Shown here: in pieces, positions 1,522-42,949 of the stretch
Layout of the letters: each line of letters starts with the position of its first letter
Position numbering within the stretch: position 1 is the stretch's first letter
Origin: Trichosphaerium sp. ATCC 40318
Taxonomy: Eukaryota > Protista > Tubulinea
Direction of reading: 5' to 3'
Assembly: GCA_038496445.1 (NCBI GenBank)
Contig: JALMLS010000331.1
Span: 1 to 51,925, forward strand
Length of the DNA: 51,925 nucleotides
Notes under the pieces: model-generated
Told to the model about the DNA's origin: nothing
What the model saw: only the letters and a program-made list of their open reading frames with translations
Databases searched by the model: none
Made by a program: the position numbers and the translations under genes

Positions 1522-2333
1522 ATGGCCTGTTTAAGTAAATATGCATGTAAATATGGTGTCCCTTCACCAGAAAAAGTGTGTCCTTCACGGGATATGATAA
1601 TTCTTGGGTTTATGCTGAAACAAAAGCACTTTAAGTATCTAAATGGTGTTCGTTCTTTGAAGATAGAGAACGTAAACAATAAATATTTTGGTAGCGGTTT
1701 GGACAAAAAAGTTAATTTTGAAAAGTTAGAAGGTATTGATACTATTGACTTTACTGATTGTTATTCGGTTACTGATGAACACCTTAAACAACTCGCTGGA
1801 ATACATAAAATCATTTTAAATGGCGCAGCTGTTACAGATGAAGGTATTCAAGCTCTGGCTGGTATTCATACTATCTATTTGAATAGATTGGACATTACAA
1901 ACAAAGGTATTAAGGCGTTGGTTGGCGTTCATGAAATAGATATAAGTCATTGTACATGTATAACGGATGAAGGAATTAAATCATTGGCTAGTGTCCATAC
2001 TATAAGTTAAGCTATTGTAAACATGTTACAGATGAGGGAATTAAAGCATTGTGTGACGTTCACACCATCTGTCTCGATGGATCAGTAGTTACAAATACAG
2101 GCATTAAAGCATTGGCTAGTGTTCATTGGGTTGGACTCAATTTTTGCTTAAGGGTCTCAGATGATGGTATAAAGGCGTTGACAGGAGTTCACACTATTTC
2201 TTTAAGCCGTTGTCACTTTGTTACAGATGAAGCTATTAAAGCGTTAGGTGGTGTTCATACTATTTTGGTAAAACGCTGTGGAGGGATTACAATTGATTAT
2301 ATAAAATCTTTAAACAATGTGGTTGAATTGTAG
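1522..2333 (+). pseudogene. Intronless cysteine-containing LRR (AMN1/FBXL-type) repeat protein with a 1-nt frameshift
   Basis: Tandem repeats of the form VHTIxLxxCxxVTDEGIKALxG occur in both ORFs 1522-2010 and 2049-2333. Restoring one T at ~2007 (agt-tta-agc-tat-tgt) joins them into SLSYCKHVTDEGIKAL. The lesion could be real or a sequencing error. Confidence 0.75.
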
Positions 2334-7064: not shown

Positions 7065-8816
7065 TTATATCTTCTTATAACTTATCTCAACACCATTATC
7101 ATAGCTCTTATATACATCATTCTTAGACATAAAAAACCCATTTACATAACCATTCTTATAAAAACAAGACTTTGCTAACTCGCCAAAATCATCCCAATTT
7201 TAATAATCTCCATCTTTTTTCCCATCTTCATTGTAAAAGCAATCTTTAACTAAAACACCTTTATCATTCCATCTCTGATACTTACCAACATTCATCCCTT
7301 CTTTATAAAAGCAATGTATACTATAAACACCTTTACAATGCCACGCATGATACTCACCATCAAGAGAACCTTCCTTGTAAAAACAAAGCCTAATCAAACA
7401 TCCTTCATCATTCCATCCTTTATACTCCCCTTCCTTAACACCTTCTTTGAAATAAAATTGTTTTTCTTGTTTACCATCATCATAAAATGATTTATACTCT
7501 CCTTCCTCCTTACCACCTTTGATAAAAACTGTAGACTTTAATTGACCATTTCTAAACCACTTTTTGCTTTCACCTTGCTTAACACCATCTTCATAATAAT
7601 GGGAGCTGATTGTGCCATCATACTTATACTTTCTAAACTCTCCATGTTTTACTTCAAATTTTTTACGCCTCCAGTGCTTCTTTATATGCCCATTAGTATT
7701 GTTTTTAATGGCTTCATCATCATCCTTATACTGCTTATAACAAGTAGAGCTTGTCAGAAGGCCAAACCTATACCCATGTACTGTAACTGATACATGCCAG
7801 TACTTGTCTTTCCATACACAATCTTTTCATTAATTTCATTACCATACCATCTTGTATGTTCACCCTGTCCTTCTCCGTCCTTATACCTACCACTGAAATA
7901 TAAACCTTCTATACTCCATTTCTTACACTCTCCATCCTTCTTACCATCCTTGTAATTATAATGCTTAGATAATTGACCATCCTCGTACCATTCTTTACTT
8001 TCGCCATGCTGCTTTCCATTAACCCACATGTCATGCTCCTTTAGTTGTCCGTTATCAAACCATATCTTTCTTTCACCATGTTTTTCACCTTCCTTTACGA
8101 CACAACTCAACATTAACTGTCCGTGTGCAAACCACTCTCTGTACTCTCCTTCAGGTTTTCCGTCCTTGTAATAAGCGCTCTTTTTTGAATTGCCATTAGA
8201 ATACCACACTTCTATCTTTCCCTCTGGCTTTCCATTATCATTGAAAGTGCCAGTGGACATTAATTCACCATTTTTGTGCCACATTTGAAGTAGACCAAAT
8301 GTCTTGTCATTTTTGTTGTGACTTTGCTTCAATTGGCCATTATCGTAAAATGACATAAATGATCCATCTCGTTTACCATCCTTGAAGTAACACGTTTTCT
8401 TTATACGACCACTCTTGTACCAGCTATGCCATAACCCACGTTTGCTCAGGTTCCTTGTTCGACAAACAAAATTAGCACCAGCAAATGTCGGAGTCACGTG
8501 TTGAATGTCAAAAGTGTATAACTACGTACTCCGTAAAGTAAGTGTAAACAGCCGCTCGTTTAGACAGAGAATGGATGGTCGTGAAGGTATGTTTATCGTA
8601 CCTACTGATTTCCACCTATAAGCACGTCAGCAGTGTTTATCATGCGTTTTAAAGCGTTTGAGGTATGCTATGAGAACGTACAAGTATTTCACGTGGTAAA
8701 CCGAGCAAATCAGTATGAGAAGATCTTAGATGCGTACTAAAGAGCGTGAGTATCAAACGGGCATGGAAAAAAATGGTGGGTTGTAACGTTTAAACTTACG
8801 CAATTCTTTTGGTCAT
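7065..8816 (-). pseudogene. F-box + MORN-variant (YwqK-like) repeat protein with a premature stop
   Basis: ATG at 8816. Three 5' introns give MTKRIA|THLRSSHTDLLGLPREIL|VEISRYDKHTF (F-box-like). Many GEYxxWYxNGQLxxxxxYKDGKK repeats follow. There is a frame change or intron near 7745-7800 and an in-frame TAA at 7200-7202, after which the repeat continues (NWDDFGELAKSCFYKNG) to TAA 7065. Confidence 0.75.
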
Positions 8817-9131: not shown

Positions 9132-12100
9132 CTATGCTTTGCTATCCTTCATTTGTTTGCTATCCTCTTGTGTTGGTGTCATTAGCGTATATTGGCTATC
9201 AGGTGGCTCATCAGTATAGTTGGATGTTGGACTATCAATGGTATCTGTGACTGAAGCTGAGCCAATGGAGGTTGCCAATTGAGCAAAAGTTGGTCTATCT
9301 TTTGCAGTAAATTGCCAACAACTTAACATCAAGTCTGCGTATACTTGTGGAGTTGTGGGGTTAATATCTGGTATCTTACCAGCCTTTATATCATAACATA
9401 GCTCTAATAATGGTGTATCTTTATGAGGTGTAGCACGATGTGTGAGTTCCCATACTACAATACCAAAAGACCATACATCAGATGCTGGCTCATAAACAAA
9501 AGAAAAGTTCTCTGGAGCCATCCATCTATCGACAAAAAGTTAGTTTCTTGTTGGGTTTGTTTTGGATTAACTGATTTCTGTCATACCTCACAGGACCTAC
9601 TTCCATAGCAGTTTGTTGTGCCTTTTCTTCAGTATTATCAAAGTTTCTTGACATACCAAAATCGCTTATCTTGATCGTGTTCTTGTCATCAAGCTATTTT
9701 TAGAACAAAAGTTAGTAAAATGCTCATTTCTTTGTAGGCTTTTTTGATGAGTTGCGTACCAATATCTACAAATAAAGAGTAAGTATATATTATATTTTAA
9801 AAGTACTACAATCAACGTACGTTTCTACAAGAGAGATCACGGTGAACAATATTATGAGAATGAAGAAACATCATTCCTTTAATGATGCCATATGTAAAAT
9901 GTTTTAATTCATTTTCTCCAAGAGCGCTATCCTGGGCAAGGAAGTATTGACGAAGGGTTCCGTTCGTCATAAAGTCCATTACAAGCATCGGACGTCCTTG
10001 GTTCAAGCAGAAACCTTGAGTAATTTAGAAACGATATACAATGAAGCATAGGAGCTGCTAACAAAAAAAGCGTACCAATAATTTGAACAACATTTGGATG
10101 TGTTGGGATATTAGTCATTATTTCGACCTTAAAAATAGATGTATCAACAGAGGTAGTTTTAAAGGATTTGACAAACATTTCATGTACTGACATACTTCTT
10201 GTAAAAACGTGGCAAGATGTTCACCTTGAAGGTTATGATTTACTTTAATTGCAACGCTTCTATTATCCTTCAAATAAATGCCCTTCCATACACTACCAAA
10301 CGATCCCTTGCCTACACAAAGCACAATAAGAACAACAATGGATACTGAGGATAAACAAACATCACGCAACGCACCTATTTCTTTGACCAAGTCAAGCTCT
10401 GCTGCACGAATCAATACACCTGTAGAAAAAAATTAGTTCAAGTTTATTTACATTTAATTTGTGCTTACCTCCACCACCGTCATCTTTGTACCCAAGTTTA
10501 ACTGTAGGTAATTTTTCGTTATCGCCACCAGTTTTTAATCTGGCTCTTCCCATTATTGGAAGATACGTGTCATCAATATCATCGTCATGACTCGTAGTGC
10601 CTTCATTTGATTTAATTGCACCAATATGCTGCTTTTCAGCATATTCATTGTTCTTTCTTTTTACGAAAAGGACTATAGCTACAATTGCAGCTATGATAAT
10701 AATAAGTATCACTGCAACTACAGCAATGATCCACCAATCTGAGACTACAAGACAGTAACTGTCAGCATGAATCCTTACAATTCTTTGAAAAGTAAAAAAA
10801 ACAGTTTTGTAAAAGACGTACACCCACTAGGATTGCCATCTTGTATAACAAGGGCTTGTGTTGGCTCAGGTGTGGGTTCAGGAGTATCGGGTATAATGGT
10901 TATATTAAATGACACTGAAGAAGTCTGCTCGATAGAACGCTTGTTAGCAAAATTAAAGTTGATTGTGACAACATGTTCTCCTTCCACAAACAAATCTCTA
11001 TCAACATTGATACGCATACAAGTATCTATGGAAAGGAGAATCAGTATTAGATACACGCTCGTTTCACTGTACCTTCTGGACATGTTGATATCACTGCAAT
11101 TGCTAGAGGCACAGTAGAAGATCCTTGAGACGCTATAGCGTTAGGTGTTCCAATACAACGCGAGTTGACTTCTAAACAAAAGAAAATATGAGTATTTTGT
11201 TTGACTTTGTGTCGTTACTTACTTAACGTGATAAACATGCTTCCGCCTCGCTCAAAGTCGCTTGTTACATTTTCTCCGCCACATGCTGTACCAACAAGGG
11301 TACGATCACCTTGTGTATCAGGTACTACCTTAGGTTCGGTTGCTGTTGTGTTGTATATCATAATATACCCTGTGAACAAATCAAGTGTAGGTTCAGGCAT
11401 TGTTATGCCACCAAGGGTAAGACCTCTTCCTTTATACTGGCCTCCTATAGTGTATAGTGGTCTATCACTGGAAACAACAAGGCAGTTTGGTAAAATCTCA
11501 GTATTAATGACCAATCCTCTATTCTTTTCTACATAGTAATGTAGCAAGTTTGCAGAACGATCATAATGCGTTATAATCATATCAAAACGTCCTAAGCAAA
11601 GCTAGAGTTAAAGCAAAAAATCAAAGGTCACAATCTTCCACAACACGTGCGATCAACATAAACGATAAAGTTCATGTACCTGTGGCTGATAGCGTTATTG
11701 ATCCAAGAGGATATGTCACTTCTATATCAGTCCCAGAGAAAGCACCAAGGTATATAATACCATTATTGTCACTTGATATTTGCATATCATTGTAAAATAT
11801 ATTTGTTGATGTACCAGCTGTACTATACTCTAAAAAAAAGGAGAGTAAGTTCGGACTGAGGCAGAGGGTTTTTTGTTCTTTTCACGCACGTGTGAATGGC
11901 TTTGACCTTTCTGGTAATCCGACTTCCCATTTAACGTACTGACGGAATCCAGTATCGTCATTCCTAACCTCAGAGAGACCATAGACTGTGTTACCAATGC
12001 TTTGCATTTGAACTAAAAAAATGTTTGCATGATTGAAAACAACGAACATGTGGAGCGTACGGATGCGGTTGAATGATCCAAGATAAGGAGTGAAAGATTG

Positions 12101-28220: not shown

Positions 28221-31188
28221 ATGGCGTCACCTGAGACTCGAAGCTTCCTTCAGCGCGCTCGCGCCGATATCAAACGATCTCGCGATGAAATAACAAACTC
28301 TGGGCAAACATGGGATCCTGTTCCCATCAACATATTCCAGTCACCCACTAAACCTCGTAAAACAACACCAAGACGCTCTGCTAGCCTTAGGAAGCTAGAA
28401 GAGACACCAAAATATGTTAAAATAGTCTGCGCCGGAGATTTCGAATTTATAGTACCGACAGCTATTGCAAAACATAGTGGGTTCGTTTTTTTAGTATTTT
28501 GAACAGTTTTACATTAAAAAAAAGTGTAAACCTGAATTCGCCGACTAATTTGCCTAGATTTTTAAAACAGATGCTTAAAGGGACTCATACGTACTTGGAG
28601 AATGTTACTAATACTATTAGACTACCTACGATTACAGCTGTAAGTAGAAATTTCTCTATTATTGTAAAACACATAAAGCCGTTAAAAAAAAAAGTCATCA
28701 AAACTGACCGCTTTCGTGTAGGATATTCTTGAAGATGTTATTAGCTATTGTTTTCAAGACTTTGTTATTAATGATGGTGTAAGAAAGTCTCACGTTCGTC
28801 GTGCCCTCTTTACTGATGGTAACGATACTCCTTCTCCTAAAGCAAGAGGTTCTGAAGCGAGAAGAAGTCCTGGTGTTAATGTTAGTAAATCTAAGTACGT
28901 TTTTGGCTGTTTTTTTGAGTATCACGTGCTCTGATAGCGTTGATTTTTTTATGTTTGGTTTGGTGTACAGTTGTTTATTTTATTAGGTCGAGGCTAGTGG
29001 CTGCTGTCGCTATTAAACCTGAGAAAGTAATGGATTTAATCGTTGCCACGCATTTTTTGGACATTCCGGATTTACTCGATATTGCCTGCAAGATGGTTGC
29101 TGATAACATTGAAGGTACATACTCTTACGCGATTTGTGTTGTTGAAATGATTTTCTTGCTGCTCTGTGCCGACCTTGTCGTACAAAGGCCTCTTTTTTTT
29201 GTATTTTCTTATTTTGCTTCTTATCGCTATTTGCAGGTGTTGAATCGCTTAAAGGACTACCTGCTGATGTTCTAGAGATAATTTACGAGCATTTAACACC
29301 AGAGAATTTAGTAAAAGTTGAGGAGAAAGCAGATTCTGATGTAAGCTTTGACTCTATATGGCATAAATTATTAGTTAAGCGTGATTGGATTGACTGCCAA
29401 GCTGCTTATGCCTACTCTTGGGAAGCGCGCATTCGCGTTGCCGAATCACAATATGAACGCCAAGATGATGGATGCAGTACGTGTACAGAGAACCTACGTA
29501 GTGCTTAATGCGGTATAGTTTTCACTATCATAAAGAATCCGAAGAGAAAGTTTTTAGAGCGTGTGTTTCAATCAAAGATAGATGCTGCTGGTTTTGGTCC
29601 AGCTGCAGCTTCAAAAGTATTCTTTTATCACGATTTGTACGGACCACATGTTGGTTCAGTGCGTATCCCGTCAACTATGGCCGATCTACGACGTTTTAAT
29701 CTGATAAAGTTTATAAAAAAGTACGCTTGATTTTTCTTCTTTTTTTCGCGGTTTAATGTTTAACCCTTAATGCTTTAGACTTGTATCTCTTCGCCGACTT
29801 GAAATTGATACTTTTAATCTAACACGGAGTGATATGATGGATATTGTTGGGTTACTGAAGAGCGGCGCTTTACCTCATTTAAAAAAATTAAAATTCCTGA
29901 GATGTGGCTTAACAGATGATTCAGTACAACCTCTCATTGACTACCTGAGTGATGTTCCCATTGCGCGTGACTCAAATGGATGCAATGGAATAACTGTGCT
30001 GGATTTGAGCGGTAATAAATTGAGTATTGCCGTCCTTGGGTACGACTACTATAGTGTTGAACTTGCTAATTTTTTTTCTAACAAAGGCGATTGGCATGGG
30101 CTGTTAAACAAAATAGAACACTAACGCACCTTGGATTAAGTGACTGTAATATAAATTCACCTAGAACTTCGCCTTGGAGTAAAAAAAACACATGTAAGTA
30201 AAACCTATTTCAAAAAGGTATCTTGCTGACATTTATTAATAAAGCAACACAACAAAGACCTCTTTGCGATTTCTTGGCTGCACTTGGGAAAAATAAAACA
30301 ATAAGACTCTTGGACTTATCATATAACTCTATTAACTTCAAATCGTTACCAGATTGGTTATGGGAGGCATTTGGAGAGAACAATGGTACATTCCTTTCTC
30401 AAAACTCGAAAGCGAAACATTCTTATTTTTTTATTCTAATTTTAGCTCTGACGCACATTATTCTTACTGAGAACGCTTTGGTACAAGATGAACATTCTTC
30501 AAAGGCTTTAGAACAGTTCTTCCTTCATTTACCTAAATATACATTGTACCTTGATTTTGCCATGTGCAGGCTGGACCCAGGTATGACGCGGTTCTGTTTT
30601 TTAATAGCAAAGTTTTTGTCTAATTTTTTTTTGTAGAGCACATGCAGCACCTTGCACTTGGTCTACGCCAGTTGAAGCATATCAAGCATGTTGATTTAGC
30701 GTCCAATCTTTTAGGCGTTGAAGCTTCTAATCACTTGAGCGCTTTGCTTCGCATGAATACTCCTTTAAAGAGGTACTAACTAAAAATCAGGAGTTTGGCT
30801 TGATTTTCTTCTGGTTTTTTTTCTCGTTTTCAGACAACAACTTTCTTACATTTGCTTTTTTAGCTTGAACTTGAGTTACAATAACTTATACGATACTGGC
30901 GTACGCGATTTGAGCCGTGCTCTCGTTCAAAATAATGTTCTTGAATACTTGGATCTCTCACGAAACGATTTATCTCTAAGCGCTATAGAGCTTGCTCGTG
31001 CTCTCGCTTCTAATTGGGAGAAGATTGGCCTCAGGTAAAAAACACGAGAAATCAGATTTTTTAGAAGTTATAACGGTTATATTAGGCGTCTAAGGATCAG
31101 TAATAATAGATACTTGACTTCTGATCAAGTAGACACAATGACAAATATTCTTAAAGGAAAGAACGTATTCCTTGTTGCGTATGATTGA
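28221..31188 (+). CDS. Elongin C/Skp1-type BTB fold fused to an Elongin A-like BC/cullin-box region and RNI-like LRRs
   Basis: YVKIVCAGDFEFIVPTAIAKHSG|FLKQML..ENVTNTIRLPTITA|DILEDVISY..IKPEKVMDLIVATHFLD is Elongin C-like. It is followed by IPDLLDIACKMVADNIE|GVESLKGLPADVLEIIYEHLTPENLVKVEE..DSIWHKLLVKRDW, then LRRs (LDLSGNKL, LDLSYNSI, LNLSYNNLYDTG, LDLSRNDL). Confidence 0.8.
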
Positions 31189-40978: not shown

Positions 40979-42949
40979 TTATTGATTAGCCTTATCGTGA
41001 TATGCAGCTTTTCTGGAGATAGCATAACCACCTCTTCCATGTTTATCACCGCATCCACGTTCTCTACTATGCTTCATACCCTTCATTAGCATCTTTTTAG
41101 TTGCTTTATCTCTATAAGTTGCTTTGTCTTTCATGTCACCACGAATCTCTTCAAGATCTTCTATCATTTCAACACATAATGCATCAGAAGCAGAAATCGA
41201 TTCTTTGACATCTATAAATAAACTAGTAAGTACAAGATTTTCAGCTAAAGGAAACTAGTTTTTTTCAATTTTTCTTAGAAGTGATGAAGATGATACTTAC
41301 GTTTGATTGCTGCATCTACTATGCCTTGTGCTTTCTTTAGGTCGGATTTACCAACGACTTGAGCTTCTGCCATGGCATTAGATGATACGATTCTAAAAGG
41401 GTAAGCGAGAGTTAAACACAAGAGAAAAAAAAAGCGAACCTGTTGATTTGAACATCCATGAAGTAATCTCTTGTTTGTTCCTTTGGTAACTCAGATTTAC
41501 GCTTGACAACAACTTTCTTTTCAATAACAGCATTTACACAAGACATAACGTTAAAGAACTCGGTTTTGTATGTGGCTACAACAAACTCCTCTACAAAACG
41601 GTCAGTTGATGAATTGAAAAAAAAGATCTAATTGATTGATTAAATTGTGTTTTCGTACCTGATTCACCACAAGCAGGAAGCTCAAATTGAGCTACTATAT
41701 TCCTTCGCTCTTCGCTGTACATATCTCCCAAGTCAAGAATGTGTACACCGTCTTTGACTTCAGTCTAAAAGACGAACGTAAGAACAAAGAAAAACATGTT
41801 GTTTCAGCGAAATAACTTTGACTTCCTTGGCCACTCACAGCGAGCAAAAAAAAATATCATTTCGTACCTTGATTTTACCCATTATTTTCTTGACTTTACA
41901 GCCATTCTCAGGTACGATAGACATTTTAATATTCTGTGCGCAGACAGATAATAAACCGCCCAAACAGTCAGCAAAACTTGATGCGATATCATCTGGATTC
42001 TCGACATAGTAGTACATTCCATTTGCAGCTTGTGCGAGTTCCCTATTTTGAAAGAAAAGTCAGAAATCAAGAAGATATTTTCAGTGAAACTACTTTCATA
42101 CCTCAACATTTTTTCGTCGTGGTCATCACCGTAACCAAACGTGAATACTTGAGCATTCATTTGCTCTTCGAGCTTTGTTTTAAGTGCTTTTACAAGTGCA
42201 GGTGATTTAGAGATACCGTGGTTTGCAAGACCATCAGTTAGAAGCCAAACACTTCGTACTTTGTTTTGAACTTTTGTTACTAAAAAAAGACGAAATAAAT
42301 AAACCGTTGGGGCGTCAAGATCTTTTCCTATGGCTGTAGGAGTTTAAAATACGTACCTTTTAGTTCTTCTAAGCCTTTAAAAAGGCCACCGCTTAAATTT
42401 GTACTAGATCCTGCCTTTATTTGGCTGACTTTACGTTTGAGCGTTGTCTAAAGGAACGAGTTGGTTGTGATGTATTTTGTGTTTATTTGAAAGTTAACTC
42501 TAGCGTTAACGGCTGGGGCGATAGCTATAGCTGTGATAATGCGTACCTTGTTGCTTGGAGTCATTTTCGTAAGCTCCATGTCTGTTCTGACGCCAGTGTC
42601 GAAACTAACGACGCCAAACGAATCAGCCTTCGTTAGTTGCGTAGAAACGAAGTTTAACGTTTCTTTAACTAACTTCATTTTCTTTGTGCCCATAGAACCG
42701 CTTCTATCTACTACAGCGCAGATATCCACGTCAGCTCTGGTGTCTTCGGCAAATGTTGGAGCATGTAGAGAGGAGCAAAAATGAGCAGTTGGCACTTCCG
42801 CTGTTGGGAATACATCGTATTCTTTGTGTGTGGCAAGTAAAAAGTCTTTTAGCTCTTCTATTATGATTTTAGATTAAAACAGCTCGTACTTGATTAAACG
42901 TACCAGTAGGTGTCTGATCTTGTTGTTGGATTGATTGTGGTTCAGCCAT
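40979..42949 (-). CDS. von Willebrand factor A domain protein (with Vwaint-like helical C-terminus)
   Basis: MIDAS motif DICAVVDRSGSM, then GSSTNLSGGL, WLLTDGLANHG, VFTFGYGDDHD, GMYYYVE..FADCLGGLLS and LGDMYSEERR. Confidence 0.9.

Follow-up and report, generated by a model that had tools for sequence, protein, structure and literature searches.

A thirteen-exon gene of the amoeba Trichosphaerium sp. ATCC 40318 very probably joins, as read from its sequence, a Skp1/Elongin C-type adaptor fold, an F-box-like helical bundle of the Elongin A type and an arm of leucine-rich repeats (LRRs) on one predicted chain. The gene lies on the + strand at positions 28221-31188 of a 51,925-nucleotide stretch of contig JALMLS010000331.1 (hereafter the window, meaning the whole stretch that was analysed), and its predicted product has ~705-721 amino acids. 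The locus is a real gene whose function is inferred only, and we consider it possible, at a likelihood not far short of even, that the protein would act as a self-contained adaptor and receptor arm of a cullin-RING ligase, made as a single chain and docking a Cul1-type cullin. Cullin-RING ligases are taught as two designs: one in which adaptor and receptor are separate chains (Skp1 with an F-box protein, Elongin C with a BC-box protein), and one in which a BTB protein does both.

The joined gene and its N-terminal fold

Exon 4, which ends the adaptor-type module, is joined to exon 5, which holds the F-box-like bundle, by the removal of intron 4, a 122-nucleotide GT..AG intron with a long, strong pyrimidine tract and matching phase. 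No methionine codon occurs in exon 5, an in-frame stop lies upstream of it and no ATG follows that stop; exon 5 can therefore be translated only if it is spliced to an exon further upstream, and only exons 1-4 are on offer. If intron 4 is retained, the frame of exon 4 reads into hydrophobic junk. A first-pass annotation of the window, made from the letters and their open reading frames, had proposed that adaptor-type and receptor-type modules share one gene, arranged as adaptor fold, F-box-like bundle and LRRs, and this agrees with the gene as we find it, given that exon 5 cannot start translation. The peptide strings that it quoted are present on the + strand: ..PEKVMDLIVATHFLD and then IPDLLDIACKMVADNIEG in exon 4, and VESLKGLPADVLE... 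in exon 5. Its description of the BTB-like end as running straight into the exon 5 stretch holds for the spliced product, the two being joined only after intron 4 has been taken out.

The profile, PDB and homology searches on this gene were run exon by exon, and for exon-sized comparisons with the amoeba's own Elongin C and Skp1 proteins, Smith-Waterman alignment with shuffled controls replaced BLASTP, which had returned no match between exon 2 and the corresponding Elongin C exon. The strongest similarity is in exon 4. In the PDB it matches 33 Skp1 sequences and nothing else (best E=0.001), in alignments over helices H5-H6, and the Pfam Skp1 profile (PF01466) matches it at 17.2 bits over positions 2-15, with position 17 of 48 as the furthest point reached. 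Against the H5-H6 region of the amoeba's own Skp1, 12 of 23 residues are identical (z=8.6-10.4 against shuffles), and the H5-H6 pattern ..A.N/H.LDI..LLD..CK.VA..I.G is present; against the last helix of its own Elongin C the count is 8 of 17 (z 7.3). In tblastn searches with these proteins, exon 4 is the top match in the whole 52-kb window, at E=1e-5 for Skp1 and E=0.016 for Elongin C.

Exons 1-3 show weak similarity, in matching order, to the portions of Elongin C and Skp1 that come before these helices. The end of exon 1 shares 6 of 16 residues with the first exon of the amoeba's Elongin C (tblastn E=0.56 when taken alone), exon 2 gives collinear local matches to Elongin C exons a and b, and exon 3 reaches z=3.2-3.7 against both Elongin C and Skp1, with the ILExVIxYC motif common to both. 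Summed collinearly, the three exons come to a z of ~5; when exon 4 is included the exon-wise sum rises to z=7.2 for Elongin C and 6.3-9.2 for Skp1, a level reached by 0 of 2000 shuffles. PDB searches with exons 1, 2 and 3 singly gave only noise, the pieces being too short, and the Skp1_POZ profile (PF03931) matched none of the exons and did not list the locus among its matches in the genome.

The assignment within this family is mixed, since the loop and helix H6 are Skp1-like while the absence of helices H7-H8 and some of the early motifs recall Elongin C. Proteins of the Skp1 and Elongin C kinds are made up almost entirely of the BTB core (Stogios 2005, PMC1257465). Like Skp1, the amoeba protein combines a predicted BTB-type fold with a long insert in the A3/A4 loop, here ~45 basic, Ser/Pro-rich residues at the site of the segment that is disordered in Skp1 (PMC1257465), and with the H5-H6 similarity given above. 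Unlike Skp1, which is a free protein of ~160 residues, the fold is the head of a chain of ~710 residues, and it has no H7-H8, the helices with which Skp1 clasps F-boxes (PMC1257465) and in which its glycosylated proline lies: the PF01466 alignment stops at profile position 17, and the tail exon of the amoeba's own Skp1 finds no match in the gene. The fused protein likewise lacks the ..DFTPEEE.. site carried by the amoeba's Skp1 genes, whose proline is the target of oxygen-dependent Skp1 glycosylation. With Elongin C it shares this lack of H7-H8, a weak collinear resemblance across strands and first helices, and the likeness of the last helix; unlike Elongin C, which has no helix A5 (PMC1257465), it possesses that terminal helix, and it carries a long loop at the position of Elongin C's short partner-binding segment. 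By these comparisons, the N-terminal part is a predicted Skp1/Elongin C-family fold that can be assigned to neither branch. The earlier description of it as Elongin C-like is thus borne out for the family and too narrow for the branch.

The same evidence bears on the helix at the end of this fold, which had been read as an Elongin A-type BC box. The stretch ..LLDIACKMVA.. in exon 4 does fit the pattern LxxxCxxxA, but so do the H6 helices of the amoeba's own Skp1 proteins, and the PDB matches of exon 4 include Skp1 chains only and no Elongin A chain, so the pattern is no mark of a BC box. Helix H6 of Skp1 (A5 in BTB nomenclature) fits the sequence far better; on this basis the supposed BC-box helix is, by sequence, a Skp1 H6, and the pattern would be inherited from it. 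The BC-box helix of Elongin A packs chiefly on the last helix of Elongin C (PMC10716050), and the first-pass annotation's placement of the helix, where a BC-box helix would adjoin that last helix, agrees with the literature (PMC1257465, PMC10716050).

The F-box-like bundle and the repeat arm

Exon 5 has a single Pfam match at E<=10, to Elongin_A (PF06881; 15.1 bits, E=0.035), which covers positions 2-53 of the 105 in the profile and falls under the gathering cut-off of 29.8 bits. Its only PDB match is to the Elongin A homology domain 4HFX (E=0.06, 67 residues), in an alignment that spans an LP/VP-led helix, TP..L...EE, W....RD(F/W) and SW at matching spacing. The F-box profiles PF00646 and PF12937 gave no match to exon 5 at E<=10, and its neighbours in the ESM Atlas that have a family assignment all belong to F-box clusters (score 0.88-0.95). 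A single-sequence AlphaFold2 model of the exon predicts three helices where they would be expected, at residues 9-18, 21-30 and 37-76, with a predicted local distance difference test (pLDDT) value of 55, too low to support a fold search. When PF06881 was run over the genome at exon level it found no canonical Elongin A, only an ordinary F-box-SPRY gene, weakly; since such a gene matches too, the Elongin_A model is unspecific at scores of this size. We therefore read exon 5, from these similarities, as a probable F-box-superfamily bundle of Elongin A flavour and not as a member of the Elongin A family. Of the Elongin A pattern that had been noticed before, the position of the SW pair stands, within the 4HFX match; at the level of the Pfam family the pattern falls short of the cut-off. 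Elongin A may be absent from this genome, or too intron-split to be seen.

The layout around exon 5 has features of several known proteins. As in Elongin A, a helix precedes the domain, in the position that the BC-box helix has there. In the amoeba protein a linker of six residues separates H6 from the LP motif. Unlike Elongin A, the protein attains half the Pfam cut-off score over half the profile, shows no match to a TFIIS-type N-terminal domain in exon 1 and no latch sequence before the helix, has a preceding helix that is Skp1 H6 by sequence, and continues with LRRs in place of a polymerase-binding tail. These repeats are of the RNI-like type that the first-pass annotation had recognised: LRR_6 matches exon 12 at 24.3 bits, over its cut-off, and exons 7 and 8 at 18.2 and 17.6 bits, and matches to LRR_4 and LRR_1 also occur among exons 7, 8 and 12. 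The succession of F-box-like bundle, linker and LRR solenoid is the receptor layout of Skp1-cullin-F-box (SCF) ligases, as in FBXL-type receptors such as Skp2, from which the protein differs in having the adaptor fold on the same chain, in leaving the Pfam F-box models unmatched and in the RNI (LRR_6) type of its repeats.

Gene structure and genomic surroundings

The window is intron-rich eukaryotic DNA with a GC content of ~37%, and the genome that was searched comprises 70.3 Mb in 642 contigs. Translation starts at an ATG at 28221, directly behind an in-frame TGA, and not at 28410, where the start of the gene had been put. All 12 introns are bounded by GT..AG, their phases fit, and the coding sequence, whose length is divisible by three, encodes 721 amino acids in the first model; the typical intron has a GTAC donor, and a CTAAT/CTTAT-like motif of branch type lies close to most acceptors. 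Where exon 8 ends is ambiguous: donors at 30146, 30179 and 30194 are all phase-compatible and leave introns of 72, 39 and 24 nucleotides. The first model leaves the 24-nucleotide intron, which is too short, and the other two donors give products of 716 or 705 amino acids. Between the alternative donors, in the region 30087-30217 of the window, lies NINSPRTSPWSKKNT, which is unlike part of an LRR.

Features of the fusion gene in the window (LRR count by eye)
Feature	Positions	Strand	Description
Exon 1, first part	28221..28406	+	start and ~62 basic Ser/Pro-rich residues, probably disordered; no Pfam or PDB match
Exon 1, last part	28407..28480	+	first strands and helix start of Skp1/Elongin C-like BTB fold; donor GTTCGT, phase 2
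Exon 2	28558..28639	+	BTB fold continued: MLxG, Elongin C-like T..EN..N.I; acceptor TAG, donor GTAAGT
Exon 3	28722..28894	+	helix with ILExVIxYC, then start of basic S/P-rich insert (A3/A4 loop)
Exon 4	28987..29114	+	end of insert, helix A4 (Skp1 H5), terminal helix A5 (Skp1 H6)
Exon 5	29237..29476	+	F-box-like three-helix region, Elongin A type: LP, TP..L..VEE, W....RDW
Intron 5	between 29476 and 29519	+	42 nt, GTACGT donor, CTTAAT branch-like motif, phase fits
Exon 6	29519..29720	+	linker from F-box-like region to LRRs; no family match
Exons 7-13	29779..31185	+	~eleven RNI-type LRRs
Exon 7	29779-30039	+	
Exon 8	30087-30145/30178/30193	+	
Exon 9	30218-30385	+	
Exon 10	30446-30580	+	
Exon 11	30637-30772	+	
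Exon 12	30864-31034	+	
Exon 13	31086-31188	+	includes stop
Stop codon TGA	31186..31188	+	

The gene is single-copy: exons 4, 5 and 7 detect no paralogue, and genome searches for one with exons 4, 5, 7 and 12 returned only the gene itself or noise. Pfam searches of the genome located a canonical Elongin C gene on contig C91 and at least four canonical Skp1 genes, with Skp1 loci on contigs C137, C88/C430, C57 and C51; cullin loci number at least seven. Two of the Skp1 loci, C88:17040-17795 and C430:17197-17952, have identical scores and open-frame lengths at the same offsets and are probably haplotigs or a very recent duplicate. At C51:262914-263076 lies a divergent paralogue of Skp1 whose N terminus is extended by ~40 acidic, Ser-rich residues and in which H6-H8 are altered. 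A Skp1 hydroxyproline GlcNAc-transferase is listed in the supplement to the published annotation (PMC10521059), and the amoeba probably has the oxygen-dependent Skp1 glycosylation pathway.

Elsewhere in the window, a 162-residue open frame at 1522-2010 (+) holds short Cys-containing LRRs (..ITDEGI..LAG.H.I..) of the AMN1/FBXL type, and one of 247 residues at 7754-8497 (-) consists entirely of MORN-like repeats (YxDGxxxGxxxxW..). Exon-sized open frames on the minus strand resemble a protein kinase C-lobe (9132-9521) and a vWA domain (42448-42795).

A proposed single-chain ligase arm and its alternatives

In the mechanism that we propose, the F-box-like bundle would pack back on H5-H6 of its own chain, in the manner of an F-box on Skp1 or of the helices behind the BC box on Elongin C; a Cul1-type cullin, a type present several times in the genome, would dock by its N-terminal domain on the face of the BTB fold and the LP motif, and the LRR arm would hold a substrate ready for ubiquitylation. 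In place of the part of Skp1 that clasps a foreign F-box, the chain would have a covalently attached bundle, which would amount to a Skp1 and FBXL pair on one chain. With H7-H8 missing and the terminal helix present, the fold is not expected to act as an adaptor for free F-box or BC-box proteins. Ligases of Cul-alpha, Skp1 and F-box proteins are considered ancestral, and those of Cul2 or Cul5 with Elongin are reported to be animal-specific (Marin 2009, PMC2785787), so that an Elongin BC-type ligase is unlikely in an amoeba.

Several observations weigh against this ligase arm. Taken singly, exons 1-3 are only weakly similar to Elongin C and Skp1 (tblastn E 0.5-7), and the domain calls lie below the Pfam gathering score at exon level, save for LRR_6 in exon 12. 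The B3 motif of Skp1, PxPN, which contacts Cul1, is only half kept, as RLPT. Packing of the bundle in cis is purely our inference, and no orthologue of the fusion gene is known. The exon 4/5 junction, searched as an exact DNA pattern, had 0 matches in metagenome contigs, and a HMMER search of exon 5 against 1.84 billion protein representatives likewise gave 0 matches, with no transcript-derived copy either, a null result that shows only that this library holds no close relative or transcript-derived protein. These last two results would also suit a wrong gene model, whether the locus comprised two genes, its product were truncated at the TAA at 29506 through retention of the 42-nucleotide intron, or it were an unexpressed, decaying gene, and the two very short introns (42 nucleotides, and 24-72 nucleotides) with the ambiguous exon 8 donor point the same way. 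Yet we regard an error of this kind as very unlikely, since thirteen open exons keep consistent phases with no frameshift, exon 5 has no start of its own, the 122 nucleotides of intron 4 are too short for a terminator and a promoter, and likeness to Skp1 gives way to likeness to Elongin A with no break at the exon 4/5 junction.

Alternatively, the modules might act in trans, the bundle binding free Skp1 or the Skp1-like fold of another copy, and the N-terminal fold being a dimeriser, a decoy or a trap that regulates or sequesters ligase parts or forms head-to-tail oligomers. The retention of at least four canonical Skp1 genes would suit such an arrangement, as would the six-residue linker, whose length might not permit packing in cis, but the loop between the Elongin C-bound helix of Elongin A and the next helix is similarly short (PMC10716050), and a fold without H7-H8 would make a poor trap for ordinary F-box proteins (PMC1257465); we think the trans arrangement improbable. 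We judge it equally improbable that the protein is functionally an ordinary Cul3-type BTB adaptor, with the exon 5 helices as its 3-box and the LRRs as its substrate domain. The topology is that of the BTB-3-box adaptors (PMC3597819), with a BTB fold and terminal A5 helix followed by a helix pair and a repeat domain. Against it, Pfam BTB (PF00651) and BACK/3-box went unmatched in every exon at E<=1, significance is reached only against Skp1 and Elongin C, partners of Cul1, Cul2 or Cul5 and not of Cul3, and exon 5 carries the LP motif of F-box type, not the 3-box signature. A further possibility is that there is no ligase role at all and that the protein is a scaffold reusing these folds, for instance in transcription elongation, as part of an Elongin-like complex, or in kinase regulation, a role reported for an Elongin C-like protein of Toxoplasma. 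In organisms other than animals, Elongin C is considered to work chiefly with RNA polymerase II (bioRxiv 10.1101/2023.07.24.550360), an Elongin C-like kinase partner appears to be listed in one paper, and PF06881 finds no canonical Elongin A in this genome. A scaffold is nevertheless highly improbable in our view, given that the TFIIS-type domain and latch are missing, that the Elongin_A match takes in only the first half of the profile and that an LRR arm behind an F-box-like bundle is the classic receptor layout.

Setting these alternatives beside the single-chain Cul1-type arm, we note that the principle of adaptor and receptor on a single chain is already known and is the rule for BTB-Cul3 ligases, the BTB-Kelch proteins being single-chain analogues of Skp1 and F-box pairs (Canning 2013, PMC3597819). 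A literature search found no described fold of the Skp1/Elongin C family fused to an F-box-like bundle and LRRs, so the layout that had been put forward as undescribed is new in its combination of parts and familiar in its principle. Like the BTB-3-box/BACK adaptors of Cul3 (BTB-Kelch, SPOP), the protein would carry a cullin-docking BTB fold, a helix motif and a substrate domain on one chain; unlike them, both of its halves resemble by sequence the parts of two-chain systems, and no dimerisation elements are seen. The case rests on one genome and on exon-level evidence.

If the fold is as inferred, the second, one-chain design of cullin-RING ligase would have been reached with sequence parts of the first, two-chain design. 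The protein would then bear directly on the equivalence long proposed between the F-box, the SOCS box and the 3-box, and would be a compact natural template for engineered degraders. We may also speculate that, in an amoeba living alongside giant viruses with many F-box genes, a receptor independent of the shared Skp1 could keep one degradation route from hijackers.

In its fullest form this proposal is that the protein is a natural single-chain SCF arm, in which a Skp1-derived fold has given up its F-box-clasping helices for a covalently attached bundle and LRR receptor, and which binds a Cul1-type cullin with no need of free Skp1, is insulated from what acts on Skp1 and is a living intermediate; stated so far, it is unlikely. 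If it were true, the arm would be shielded both from F-box proteins introduced into amoebae by giant viruses and intracellular bacteria and from the oxygen-dependent glycosylation of Skp1. It would also stand as an intermediate between the two-chain (Skp1/F-box, Elongin C/BC-box) and the one-chain (BTB-3-box) cullin receptors.

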